From: Octopus bimaculoides
Taxonomy: Eukaryota
Length of the DNA stretch: 64,000 nucleotides
Direction of reading: 5' to 3'
NCBI RefSeq assembly: GCF_001194135.2
Contig: NC_068991.1
Location: 40,499,878-40,563,877, forward strand
This document shows positions 23,217 to 45,697 of the stretch, piece by piece. The position numbers were made by a program, and so were the translations under genes. Position 1 is the first letter of the stretch. Every line of letters begins with the position of its first letter. The notes below the pieces were generated by a model. That model saw only the letters and a list, made by a program, of their open reading frames with translations, ran no database searches and was not told the DNA's origin.

Positions 23217-25539
23217 GTAAAGCATTTTACTTTTTTCTTCTTTAATTTGTTCTCTAATATAGAGTTTTAAAATATTTAAGTTTAATTTTTATTCTATTTT
23301 TGTAAGCTTGTAAATTATTTTAGAGTTTAAAGAAGGAGAAAAAGATATTGCATTGCATGAATTTTCATTGAGTTTTGCAATGTGAATAAAGTTTGCCTGT
23401 TCTTGAAGCTTTTAAACTAATGGGTTTTTCAATTGCTTTTCATACTAAATGAAAAATGTTCATGTAGTTATTTTCTCAGATACTGTATTCATGTTAATTA
23501 TATAGTTATTTTATAAAACAAGGATTAGTCACTTAAACTAAAAAAAAATAGTTTAAATATATTTTATTTTAGTTTAAATATTTACTCTTAACCTAAGAAG
23601 GAAAATATATATTTTGATAATTATTTACAATGAATATAATAAATTTCTTTACTCTGTTCTTTAAATTTCAGAACAATTCCTTCCTAATAGGTGCCCATTC
23701 TACATAGTTAGAAATTCCTGCAGATATAAGAGCAGTTATTTGAATTATTTCTCTTCAGTTTTCTGTTTAATTAAAATTCATTATGATTAGAATTGGCAAT
23801 ATTTAGTAAACTTCTTGTCGGTTCCTGGCTACAGATACTTTACGATACTGTCTCCTGATTTAGTTAAGGTTTACTATTTTATGTTTCTATTTCGTTATTT
23901 TAACTCAGTTTCTTGTACCTTTCAACCTCAGACTCATTTCAAATGGTTATATTTTTGTTGTAAGCTGTTTTTTTTTTTTTCCTGTTTATTTTTTTTTCCT
24001 TCCAGGTTAATTGAAAATAATTGCTGTTCATAACAGCAATCATATATTCGATTTTTTTTTTTTTTTTTTTTTTCGTAATTAAAGAATAAAATATCATTTA
24101 CTATATTGTACCTAAGTATGTGCTTGAAAGCAGGGAAGACAACAGAGGTTTCATTTTCCTTTATTTTCAGTAATTCTTAAATTACCTTTTTTAAGTATTT
24201 TACTCACATTTCGTTCATTAATGTGTCAAATTTCTGTTTCCATTCAGCTCCTCTCAGATACTAATTGACAAAATAGTTATCTTCTAAGAATTTCTTCTTT
24301 TAAATACAAATTAATACCAATTATTTTCAATAGTAATATGGTCATTACCAAACTTACTTCAAGTTATTTTAATGTTCATGAATGCATTATTTGTTAGCAA
24401 AGAAAATTATGATTCTATGACTTTCATCGTCTCATATCTTGCTATCAAATTTTATTTATTGAATTGCTTCATCACATACATATTGCTTTTTGTTGATTTT
24501 TTTTTCTTTCATATTCCTAAATTTCAGTTTACAGAGCTGAATTCTATTTTCAGTTTGGTTTTGTATTTTTTAGATATTTTTAGTATATTGGATTAAGGAC
24601 TATAGTAATTAAAACCAAATGAGTAATGATAATTATCATTGAGGAAAAAAAGCTTAAGTAAAACACCAAATTCCTGGTATTTAGATTGAGTTGTTTTTCA
24701 ATGAAGGTTTCTGTGTTGTGTCCTTTGGCAACACACTTAACTCTGCTTGCTTAGGGTTCTATTGTCTATTTAAGAAGCTGCTATTAGGATGTAGTCAATG
24801 AGCTTATTCTATTGTATCTGCATGATTCTTTATATATTATAGTAATGCTAGGTTTACAAATACATATGTAGATAAGTTTTTTTATACTTCTTTATTTATG
24901 TCTTATATGTATAGTAAATTGGCTTGCATGATTCAAAATATTTCTTTGTAAATATTACTTCAGTTAATATTTTGGCATGCAATAACTTTTTACTCCATAC
25001 AGCCTACTGAAGACTCGTAAACTTCATTGATAAAAGGTGCATTTAAAAAAAAAAAGATTATTATTATAATAGTAATAATATAACAAGTTTTCTTTATTTT
25101 TGGCTTCATCTGGAGGAAGTAGCCATGTCCATGACCTTCACAAACCATCTGAGACTAGTGAGATTGATGCAATTAATGCCCCCACCTCCCTGCCACTCTT
25201 GAATAGTTGAAGATTAATGGCTGTAAGAAAAACATGTACAAGGACAGATTTCCAGAGGGCCAACATTCTGGAGGGAAAAAAAACAACCCAGTTTACTTCA
25301 AGCCAATGAGGAAATAGCAGCCGCTCACGTTTCCCTCAAATTCCACCCTACTATCTTAAATTAGGAAAGGACACCCTAAACAATGTAGTCCTTGCTATAT
25401 ACATATACACTCATACACAAACATGGAGTAAACTGTCTGAAGGTGTTGTTTCTCCTTGTTTTAATAATGTTTTACATATATGAAATCTTTTTAGTTATAC
25501 TTGTGATGACAAATGCCACTTCAGCAAAACTGAGTTCTA

Positions 25540-26620
25540 GAAGTGCTGTGTTTTCTACCCACATGTAACAATAAAACTTTTCACACACCCTACCCCAACA
25601 AACCAAACTACATTTCTTCTCTTCCTCACATTTCCCCTTTTCGTGCACTATGCTTATGCTTATCTCTAGCTTCCCAATCCTGTCTTCACTACCCTGCTCA
25701 CTGTATCATCGCTATCCTATTGTCCGCTACCCCCTCTATATACCCAGGTTTCACCAGTTACTGCATACTCCACCCCACACACACACACGCACTCTTTGTA
25801 TTTGTGTGAAGTCTCTAGTCTCTACTCATGCACCTTTGGCAATACCCTATCATTTATATTCTGACCCCTGTACCTTAAGGGCATGCCCTGACACTTCACC
25901 ATAATCTATCTCTCTCTTGCTCTTCTCTACCATTCCATTTATATTCTGATTCCCATTCCTTAGAATATGCCCTGCCACTTCACCACCATCTCTTTCTTGC
26001 ACTCTCACTCTCTCTCTCTTTCCTTTGTTCACTCCATCTGACTGAGTAACCATATATCTCCTCTACTGCAGCACACCTGTTTCTGTCTTCATTTTCTCTC
26101 TCTCTCTTTCTCTCTCTCTCTCTCTCTCTCTCTCTCTCTCTCTCTCTCTCTCTCTCTCTCTCTCTCTCTCTCTCTCTCTCTCTCTCTCTCTCTCTCTCTC
26201 TCTCTCTCTCTCTCTCTCCAGATAACCATGTATCACCTCTACAGTATGTCTCTGTCACACTCTAACCTTTCATCACCTGGTACAAGATGACCTTCTCCAG
26301 TGCCCCTCCCCTCTGCAGGGATCTTTGTCTTGCAAATTACTTGGTGACCCTGCCATGCCACGTAAAAAGCATCCAGTCCACACTGTAAAGTGGTTGACAC
26401 TTGGAATGTCAAAACTGACCTCGCCTGTGCTGGTTCCACATAAAAACCAATCAGTCCATTTTGCATGATGATTGATGTTAGGAAGGGCATCCAGCTGTAA
26501 AAACCATACCAAAACAGACATTGAAGCCTACTGCAGTTTTTTGCCTAGCCAGCTCCTGTCAAACCATCCAGCCCATACCAGCATGGAAAGCTGATGTTAA
26601 ATGATGATTATGATGATGAC
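25540..26620 (+). mobile_element. RTE-type 3'UTR and tail containing (CT)n at about 26095..26218
   Basis: C/T-rich UTR matches the reverse of 14600..15020 and 48640..49335; ends ccagcatggaaagctgatgttaaatgatga. Confidence 0.7.
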
Positions 26621-27006
26621 GATGAATAATTTCAATATATACTCCCCTACTCATACACTTCAAATGTTAAACAGTTGATAAATATCTCTCCTGAACACTG
26701 ACCTGTGTTAGGTTTTATTCATAGAAGGGTTTTATCTCCACAATGAAAGCTTACAAAACACCTGTCAATTACAGATTGTTTTGGTAATTTTAATGACAAA
26801 GAATAATTTTTTCCATGTCCTTTTTGGTGCTAATCAAATCATTTGAGTACTTCTGTGGCTGCTAAAGAAGAAACATAAGAGTGGAACATACTTCTTTTGT
26901 TTTCCAACACTAAATTCAATGAAAATAGTTACATTTCATGAGGTCATCCTACAATGCTCATATATGAGTTGACATCTTTTATCTAATACATTATCATCAA
27001 TGAGTA

Positions 27007-27190
27007 AGGTTGTGAGCTGGCAGAATCGTTAGCTTGCTGGGTGAAATGCTTAGCAATATTTTATCCATCTTCACATTCTGAGTTCAAATTCCGCCATGGC
27101 TGACTTTGCCTTTCATCCTTTCAGGGTCGATAAAATAAGTACCAGTTGAATGCTGGGATCGATGTAATTGACTAGTCCCCTCCCACAAAA
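27007..27190 (+). mobile_element. SINE family B, near full length
   Basis: gagctggcagaatcgttag head, ctgagttcaaattcc B-box-like motif, ggtcgataaaataagtaccagttg core. Confidence 0.8.
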
Positions 27191-43753: not shown

Positions 43754-43865
43754 TCTCTCTCTCTCTCTCTCTCTCTCTCTCTCTCTCTCTCTCTCTCTCT
43801 CTCTCTCCCTTTCTCTCCCTCTCTCTCTCTCTCTCCCTTTCTCTCCCTCTCTCTATCTCTCTATT
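43754..43865. repeat. (CT)n microsatellite
   Basis: Direct reading. Confidence 0.95.
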
Positions 43866-45481
43866 ATCTCTGAAAACTTAGTCTTCCAACAATCTAGATC
43901 ACTAGTCAGAAAAAGTTCTCTAAAATATATCCCTTGTTACTTTTTAAAAACAGGTTTGACAACGTACTATTATTATTACCATAGGGGTAGAGGAGTTGGT
44001 ACAAACAAGAAACATCTAAACTAGGTGTTTTACCATTATTCAGGTGTTTTATTTTTGTTTATTTTTTTTTTAGACTTGTGGGCTTTTTAGTTCATGAGCT
44101 CTATCGAGAGATCAGCTTTACCTTCTTGTTTGACTCCACAATTTGGTAGTAATTATCACATGCTGTATTGAATTCCATTAATTATTGATCTTTCTTTCCA
44201 ATTTGAGACATCATGCCAAAGTAAGAAAATATTATTATTCTTCTGTGGGGGTTGATTCAACAAACTGGTTGCAGTCTACAGCTAAAGCTACTTTTTCATC
44301 ATATGCCACTTGCTGCCTTAGTATATAGACAAATTCCTATTTCTCTCCCTATAAAATCTACAAGTGTTATCTTTTTAAGAAAGAAAACTTATATGAACGT
44401 GAATTCTCAAACTAATTTCAAAGTCAATTCTAGCAACTTTTGTTAGGTTGCTAATCTGAGGATTAAATTGTAATTATAAAATCATTATTATTGTTATTAC
44501 TGAGTACAACGAGAAATGACTTTTCAGGAACTTGATTCCACATAAAAACCACTTCAATTCCACATAAAGTCTACATCAGTTGTAACCTTCAAAACAAGGC
44601 TTCAACACCACACTTTAGCATATCTTCTCTCCTTTTTAATACTAGGATGTCATACCTAACCTTCATCATCATTATCATCATCATCATCATATATTTATAC
44701 CCATTTGTCCAAGGTTACTTAATGTCCCTTGTGGTTAACCAATACAATAGAAGTAAGCTCCTTGTGAGCCAAGTCTACAACACTGTTTTGATGCCCTATC
44801 AATGCCATTTCACTTTACATTGCCTTTGAAAAAAAAAGGTATTGTATGTCACACAAACTCATTTCCCCTCTTCCATAAATGTAGGGCCTTGTGCCAACAT
44901 AAACCACCAATTATTGTGATAACTTAGGATCTACAAAGTGTGATGAGCAATTCTCCTTCAGCAGTGCTGGCGTCAAAGACTTTTTTGAGCCAGAAATATC
45001 AGTTCATTGCATGGGCCAGCTTCTTCATTGCCTAGCATTTGCACGTTGCATGCATGTATATTCTTTATATTGTTTTGTTGTTTTTTTTCTTTTCTGATTA
45101 TCACAATAATTTTACTTTATCGCTTGTTATGTGTGTGTGTGTGTGTGTGTGTATATATATATATATATATATATATATATATATATATATATATATACAT
45201 GTATGTGTGTGTGTGTATATATATGTATGTGTGTGTGTTTATATGTTATTTTATTTAAGACAAAAAATATATAAAGCAATTTTATCAGTATTACTGTCAG
45301 TTTTATCCTTTATTTTGTTTTTTAATTCTTTTTATTTGACTTTTTTTTTCCTTTCTTGGCAAGTATACATATATATATATATATATATATATATATATAT
45401 ATATATATATATATATATATATACATATATATATAAAATTTCCTGTTATTATTTTTATTGTTATTATTCTTTTGTTTTCAG

Positions 45482-45697
45482 ATTCGTGTTGTAAACGCTT
45501 TTCAAATGGATTTAGATTCTCACTTGGACAGCTATGACAAACGCAGTCGGCCCTCTGTTGCCAGCTTGCCATCTCTTCAATTACGCTCTGGACCATTAAA
45601 AAAAAATAATCTTCCAAGTTCTCCTGAAACGGATGAATGTCCAAGTAAACCATGGCTAAACCGTGCCGAAAGTATCCCATATGCTGACGAACCTTAA
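45482..45697 (+). CDS. ATP2B: PMCA alternative terminal exon T3 (IRVVNAFQMDLDSHLDS...RAESIPYADEP*), 71 aa
   Basis: TTTTGTTTTCAG acceptor; IRVVNAF start with 29/36 nt identity to T2 over the first 12 codons; no PDZ-type end. Confidence 0.87.
   Translation: MRVVNAFQMDLDSHLDSYDKRSRPSVASLPSLQLRSGPLKKNNLPSSPETDECPSKPWLNRAESIPYADEP

Follow-up and report, generated by a model that had tools for sequence, protein, structure and literature searches.

Three homologous last exons that probably provide alternative completions of the calmodulin-binding helix in the plasma-membrane Ca2+-ATPase gene of Octopus bimaculoides

In vertebrate plasma-membrane Ca2+-ATPases (PMCA), the calmodulin-binding domain is marked by a Trp1/Phe18 motif, and splice site C is placed inside this domain (PMC12693652). 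The vertebrate a and b variants are generated by a frame-shifting design and differ in autoinhibition, while PDZ partners have been documented for the b tails (PMC13464777). The substitution of tandem duplicated exons has also been listed for the PMCA family, namely for Drosophila PMCA, C. elegans mca-3 and vertebrate ATP2B (Martinez-Gomez et al. 2022, PMC9741552); the passage concerned describes homologous tandem exons used alternatively in PMCA of several phyla, as found here, and does not mention molluscs, a three-exon array, terminal-exon usage or which PMCA exons are involved. The present analysis concerns the 3' half of the calmodulin-regulated PMCA gene of Octopus bimaculoides, which is contained in a window of 64,000 nucleotides (the whole stretch of DNA that was analysed; coordinates 40499878-40563877 in a 2.34 Gb genome). 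With good confidence, the last common exon of this gene, designated J, is spliced to one of three homologous last exons (T1, T2 and T3), each of which completes the calmodulin-binding helix differently, at the position of vertebrate site C. The three tail isoforms are already in public annotation and are an ordinary feature of the gene, not a new one: the cephalopod RefSeq and GenBank PMCA models, which are computational, have exactly these three tails, while the searchable literature yielded neither a functional or evolutionary description of them nor any report on C-terminal PMCA splicing in molluscs or cephalopods.

All features of the window described here lie on the forward (+) strand. 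Exon J (23031..23216) encodes the N-terminal half of the calmodulin-binding domain, that is, helix positions 1-11 in the numbering that sets its Trp (codon 23184-23186) as position 1. Its protein ends with ...ILWVRGLTRLQQQ and its DNA with ...GRRGQILWVRGLTRLQQQ, followed by the donor sequence gtaaag, in phase 0. The three terminal exons likewise start in phase 0; each follows a pyrimidine tract and AG and is closed by a stop codon of its own. The b-like terminal coding exon T1 (34431..34826) is entered at the border ttctgttgacag then CTTCGG, starts with LRVVRAFKST and encodes 131 aa (LRVVRAFKSTLEDLEEKRSIHSF...NIHETSI; stop TAG, 34824-34826). Terminal coding exon T2 (35920..36096; border tgtttttcag then ATTCGT) starts with IRVVNAFRMA and encodes 58 aa (IRVVNAFRMALDARYDGHSL...QTVDTSV; stop TGA, 36094-36096), and terminal coding exon T3 (45482..45697; border tttgttttcag then ATTCGT) starts with IRVVNAFQMD and encodes 71 aa (IRVVNAFQMDLDSHLDSYDKRSRPSVASL...ESIPYADEP; stop TAA, 45695-45697). 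The original prediction, made from the sequence of this locus, held that the mid-domain end of exon J can be joined in frame to any of the three, and this is borne out by the uniform phase 0 and by RefSeq, to whose proteins the J+T1, J+T2 and J+T3 products are identical letter for letter. T1 is the tail of RefSeq X1, X3 and X5, T2 that of X9 (XP_052827695.1) and T3 that of X8 (XP_052827694.1; identified by an exact match to the predicted 1238-aa protein); a query built from the window exons was 100% identical to RefSeq XP_052827689.1 across the scored tail region.

The joined exons restore a complete calmodulin-binding domain profile. Exon J alone scores 35.7 bits against PF12424 (cut-off 22.9 bits), and the scores rise to 59.2 bits for J+T1, 59.8 bits for J+T2 and 60.3 bits for J+T3. 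Val14 and Phe18 are present in all three tails, so that the predicted Trp-1/Phe-18 anchor spacing is kept by T1, T2 and T3 alike, and the joined octopus sequence can be aligned to the 2KNE and 1CFF peptides. Genome-wide, exon J is the only above-cut-off match to the first half of PF12424, and the gene is the single calmodulin-regulated plasma-membrane Ca2+-ATPase (PMCA, ATP2B-type) of O. bimaculoides. Weak PF12424 hits on contigs C5, C10 and C2, considered as a second PMCA or an extra calmodulin-binding exon, are riddled with stops and were rejected as chance matches. A six-frame scan of the window for [ILVM][RK][VI]V..F starts gave no further usable tail besides T1-T3; a motif match at 33714, considered as a fourth tail, runs directly into stop codons.

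The octopus arrangement shares its split point with the vertebrate one. At site C of vertebrate ATP2B1-4, the domain is split after the same helix position 11 (...QTQ followed by I/M..VV.AF), likewise in phase 0, and HMMER aligned octopus ...RLQQQ and the following IRVV to human ...RIQTQ and IRVV in PMCA2 (9GSD) and PMCA4b (2KNE). The PMCA1 construct 6A69 was aligned at ...RIQTQ followed by MDVVNAFQSG..RRQPSIAS and then by IRVVNAFRSS; vertebrate PMCA thus also has tandem duplicated xxVVxAF starts, MDVVNAFQ... and then IRVVNAFR..., and, as in octopus, one tail type with a PDZ ligand and another without. In its sequence STLEDLEEKRSIHSF, octopus T1 resembles the human b tail. The human b tail is taken here to be SSLYEGLEKPESRTSIHNF, in part on the structure alignment. 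The two designs differ in other respects. In vertebrates, the full or partial inclusion of a cassette exon shifts the reading frame of the b exon, whereas in octopus there are three terminal exons with stops of their own, phase-0 starts and a single tail per product, which agrees with the contrast to the cassette-plus-frameshift design drawn in the original prediction. Moreover, the b-like T1 comes first in the octopus exon order, unlike in vertebrates, and the octopus has three choices in one gene, whereas vertebrates have two choices in four paralogues. As regards a possible orthology of the non-b tail with the vertebrate a insert, the J+T3 alignment extends through MDVVNAFQSG..RRQPSIAS of 6A69, and in comparisons of the tail after the helix with shuffled sequences T3 gave p = 0.025 (uncorrected), while T1 and T2 were not significant. 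The T3 profile alone gave no 6A69 match at E <= 10, and T1, T2 and the T3 profile, searched alone, gave no PMCA match among solved structures at the same limit, which says little since little of the helix is left in them.

The tails are represented in other cephalopods by gene models and, for two of the three, by transcripts. All three tails are modelled in O. sinensis (X1-X12) and O. vulgaris (CAI9730187-9), and the T3 tail is modelled in Argonauta hians (GAB1599825), so that the J-T3 join is found in models of four cephalopod annotations. Among assembled cuttlefish RNA sequencing (RNA-seq) contigs, the intron-free L013 and L014 contain ...CTCCAGCAACAG joined to CTTCGGGTAGTG, which corresponds to the J-T1 junction, and the likewise intron-free L015 and L016 contain ...CAACAG joined to ATTCGTGTTGTT, which corresponds to the J-T2 junction. 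These borders map to octopus positions 23216/34431 and 23216/35920, with nothing between J and the tail, and the J-T2 protein is carried by 16 cuttlefish RNA-seq contigs. Exactly one tail is present in every model and in each of the 4 cuttlefish transcript contigs examined.

The original prediction interpreted the likeness of T2 and T3 as exon duplication under purifying selection. The underlying comparison was reproduced: 29 of the first 36 nucleotides are identical, and none of the three differences within the first seven codons alters the amino acid. The homology extends beyond the helix. When the shared helix (first eight residues) was removed, the T2-T3 alignment still gave p = 0.0004 against shuffles, and the comparison of T1 with a T2-type tail of another species gave p = 0.0002, with the common pattern D..EKRS..S..S.HS; direct comparisons of the octopus tails were not significant for T1-T2 (p = 0.11) and T1-T3 (p = 0.07). 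A T3 profile searched against a library of 1.84 billion proteins matched T2-type tails at E values from 8e-10 to 1e-3. Judged by these alignments, the three tails are homologous exons that derive from one ancestral exon by ancient duplications, and the proposed duplication under purifying selection is upheld. It is, however, neither recent nor octopus-specific. In the bivalve Mya arenaria (CP111025.1; L017), exons of the J, T1, T2 and T3 types occur in the same order (at 4756, 6670, 8445 and 14630) on one strand, each behind an AG acceptor: J ends with ...LTRLQQQ, the T1-type exon reads LRVVKAFKSTLEDLEEKRS...ETSI*, the T2-type exon IRVVNAFRMGLDMRYDSHSLTS...TTSL* and the T3-type exon IRVVNAFQTDLD...SIPYADE*. 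The shared order indicates that the array predates the bivalve-cephalopod split, and the 29/36 identity of T2 and T3 is therefore a sign of strong constraint on the helix codons and not of youth.

The individual tail types are distributed even more widely. T1-type tails joined to J were found in gastropods, bivalves, a nemertean, a brachiopod, an annelid, chelicerates, a myriapod, crustaceans and insects, and those of other phyla end with ETSI, ETTI or ETRI. T2-type tails joined to J were found in invertebrate gene models and transcript contigs, and the T2-type ends seen beyond octopus are TTNL, DTRV, TTSL and ETAV. T3-type exons of the gastropods and bivalves Nucella, Elysia, Tegillarca and Mya are 55-74% identical to octopus T3, and across molluscs the elements KRSRPSV, DSYDKRSRPS and SIPYADE vary little or not at all. 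In these four genera the T3 exon is often called alone as a 'hypothetical protein'; in Mya, it is annotated within the separate 158-aa MAR_011128. While the cross-phylum occurrence of tandem exon substitution in PMCA is read as convergence in the relevant passage of Martinez-Gomez et al. (PMC9741552), the T1-type tail described here is clearly common to protostomes. Similar tails in arthropods, which the original prediction considered possible, are thus present as far as the T1 type is concerned, whereas the arthropod T2 type is represented only by beetle read-through models. In these models (P0128 and P0103), the T2-type exon follows the T1-type exon, is preceded by VIGGELQERLIPVPYSKSSTDQA and ends with ETAV. 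Its SSIEYADN resembles the mollusc T3 end SIPYADE by eye, and this likeness of beetle SIEYAD was not detected by the T3 profile. In some wasp and ant isoforms (P0138-P0142, P0147 and P0149), TSNRTLVQNVSVTGRSPSQDY[HY]M is inserted between J and T1, an insertion that would break the W1-F18 spacing.

In this arrangement, exon J supplies helix positions 1-11, and the chosen tail supplies position 12 onward, including Val14 and Phe18, together with its own C-terminus. The tails differ at helix positions 12, 16 and 19-23 (R/K at positions 16/19 in T1, N/R in T2 and N/Q in T3), which by analogy with the vertebrate a/b variants may affect how tightly calmodulin is bound and how strongly the pump is autoinhibited. 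The number of basic residues at positions 12-20 is 3 in T1, 2 in T2 and 1 in T3, and the net charge over positions 12-28 is 0, +1 and -2, respectively. The C-termini differ as well, a feature missed by the original prediction: ETSI of T1 and DTSV of T2 match the class I PDZ-ligand consensus, and YADEP of T3 does not fit it. T1, the most basic tail at positions 12-20 and one with the putative PDZ ligand ETSI, may accordingly behave as a vertebrate b form and would then confer tight autoinhibition, high calmodulin affinity and binding to a scaffold. T2 would be intermediate, with its putative PDZ ligand DTSV. T3, with one basic residue, a net charge of -2, no PDZ ligand and the elements KRSRPSV and ESIPYADE, may be more a-like, which would mean that it grips calmodulin less tightly, is more active at the basal level and binds other partners. 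A grading of calmodulin affinity and autoinhibition by the tail, suggested by the charge and by the vertebrate a/b variants, is plausible, and tail choice probably also sets scaffold binding, beyond the tuning of calmodulin response.

Several observations weigh against the splicing of J to three graded, fully separate last exons. The clean charge gradient is seen at positions 12-20 only, since the net charge of T1 over positions 12-28 is brought to 0 by its EDLEE run; the fall in basic charge from T1 to T3 that had been predicted thus stands for the former positions, but the acidic run is not unique to T3. The octopus RefSeq models are computational, no J-T3 junction was found among the assembled transcripts, and the sole cuttlefish RNA-seq contig with T3 (L008) has 277 nt of sequence other than exon J before it. 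Furthermore, T1 may share the poly(A) site of T2 and hence not be a fully separate last exon. That site likely lies in the block 37929-38077, the most distal of four blocks conserved between octopus and cuttlefish (36097-36369, 36552-36777, 37055-37182 and 37929-38077); it is 85% identical, has ATGAATAAAAACGTTT in common in both species and contains stops in every frame. These stops and the conserved AATAAA (38031-38036) exclude it as a coding exon, and the probable T2 3' untranslated region (UTR) would span 36097..38077 (~1.9 kb). Only unconserved poly(A) hexamers were found for T1 and T3. It is conceivable, but rather doubtful, that T1 and T2 are alternative 3' splice sites of one composite terminal region with a shared poly(A) site near 38031, in which case T1 mRNAs would carry T2 in their 3' UTR and T3 would be the only separate terminal exon. 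T2 indeed starts only 1.09 kb past the T1 stop, no conserved poly(A) signal was found other than the one 3' of T2, the interval 35315-35547 between T1 and T2 is partly conserved with cuttlefish, and the cuttlefish T1 transcripts stop in microsatellites before any poly(A) tail; however, no transcript was seen to run from T1 into T2, and AATAAA hexamers at 35068 and 35072 (~245 nt past the T1 stop, unconserved) could give T1 a site of its own. The use of T3 in turn requires that the T1 and T2 acceptors are skipped and that the T2 poly(A) site is passed over, and L008, together with the genome annotations that have T3 alone, could be explained if T3 belonged to a separate downstream transcription unit and not to PMCA. 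Such a unit is highly improbable: T3 lacks a conserved start codon, opens in phase 0 with the first seven residues of T2 and synonymous differences only, stands behind T1 and T2 in the bivalve too, and is joined to J in the models of the four cephalopod annotations. Positions 1-277 of L008 in part match octopus 39970-40031, between T2 and T3, at 82% identity, but the frame that is open in cuttlefish is broken by indels in the octopus counterpart. A coding cassette was rejected on account of these indels, and this upstream part is probably non-coding. It may represent an alternative 5' exon or a non-coding transcript.

Even if J is joined to all three last exons, tail choice could serve mainly localisation or partner binding, with all three helices binding calmodulin about equally. 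Trp1, Val14 and Phe18 are the same in all tails, the ends of T1 and T2 contrast with that of T3, PDZ-type ends recur in the T1- and T2-type tails of other phyla, the phosphorylation-like KRSRPSV and the SIPYADE of T3 are near-invariant in molluscs, and PDZ partners are known for the vertebrate b variants (PMC13464777). On the other hand, positions 16 and 19, which differ among the tails, lie inside the bound helix, and vertebrate a variants that differ there also differ in regulation. As an account of the main role of tail choice, localisation appears somewhat unlikely; it is not mutually exclusive with the tuning of calmodulin binding.

The beginning of T1 is far more conserved than the catalytic exons. 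Over its first 95 nt, octopus T1 matches a decapodiform genomic contig (L009) at every base (100% identity), compared with 76-87% identity of other PMCA exons to cuttlefish transcripts, and the preceding ~110 nt of intron (34320..34430) are ~90% identical to L009 and form a candidate splicing-control element. This conservation suggests a constraint at the RNA level, most simply the control of splicing at the first acceptor. An RNA structure at the T1 start was considered and rejected, as the fold is no stabler than shuffles (z = +0.70) and only short inverted repeats without nesting are present. Within the conserved T1 stretch, the sole difference between the two genomes and RNA-seq contigs L013 and L014 is at position 34452 (T1 codon 8), which is A (Lys19) in the octopus and L009 genomes and G (Glu) in the contigs. 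The difference may be due to A-to-I editing or to a substitution in a third species; the L009 genome contig is from another species than the RNA-seq, the mismatch spectrum is mixed, and there is no A/G variation among the cuttlefish transcript contigs.

A broader scenario, which we regard as quite unlikely when taken as a whole, would combine these observations: an ancestral bilaterian a/b switch would have been subfunctionalised into T1, T2 and T3, with RNA-level control of T1 choice. In such a scenario, the vertebrate b tail would have its orthologue in T1, and the a insert would have its orthologues in T2 and T3; of these two, T2 would have retained the PDZ ligand and T3 the SI-x-YAD end, which beetle T2-type tails have as well. 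The 95 exonic and ~110 intronic conserved bases would mark the RNA control, and recoding of Lys19 to Glu by A-to-I editing at 34452 might possibly retune calmodulin binding.

The splitting of the helix between a common and an alternative exon is at least as old as the mollusc ancestor, and the T1-type tail dates to early protostomes. Through last-exon choice, an animal with one PMCA gene would obtain both b-like and a-like pumps. The orphan 'hypothetical protein' calls for T3 in the Nucella, Tegillarca, Elysia and Mya annotations are wrong, and the three natural tails offer a matched set for studying how helix positions 16 and 19-28 and the PDZ end tune the pump. These results serve mainly to correct the record and to add a minor evolutionary observation, and they do not overturn current understanding.

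Nine PMCA coding exons (A-I, 1318..20711), all with GT-AG borders, lie upstream of exon J in the window: A, B and C at 1318-1556, 1696-1838 and 5530-5651, D, E and F at 6792-6974, 9881-10075 and 13844-14035, and G, H and I at 16548-16761, 18395-18612 and 20604-20711. Together with J they form one frame of 1800 nt (600 aa), the translation of exons A-I is identical to RefSeq XP_052827678/689, and these exons are matched exon by exon by cuttlefish transcripts. The window exons encode core motifs of P-type ATPases, with DKTGTLT encoded by an exon upstream of the window, and the full-length RefSeq match carries PF00122, PF00702, PF00689 and PF00690. The TIGR01517 profile is matched exon by exon along contig C11, which places the start of the gene >85 kb upstream of the window.

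No exon contains N. The J-T1 intron (23217..34430) includes N runs at 28298-28818 and 31736-31858, and since the J end and all tail starts are in phase 0, the frame is independent of gap length. An extra alternative exon may lie inside one of these gaps; none was found in the compact J-T1 intron of Mya arenaria. Other gaps are located at 16155-16254 in the F-G intron, at 47285-47316 and 49907-50680, which are 3' of the T3 stop and, as suggested by cuttlefish contig L008, in the T3 3' UTR, and, furthest downstream, at 58360-59116. A long (TA)n microsatellite (45365-45425) lies 55 nt 5' of T3, and repeats of this kind interrupt many of the transcript and genome contigs of related species. Upstream of the window, the RefSeq isoforms P0179, P0175, P0172 and P0176 vary in an insert between membrane segments 2 and 3 (e.g. 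LLANEPEGNIDNNKVNTADSGKKASHVSKAWLNKSS, present or absent), which corresponds to splice site A of vertebrates.

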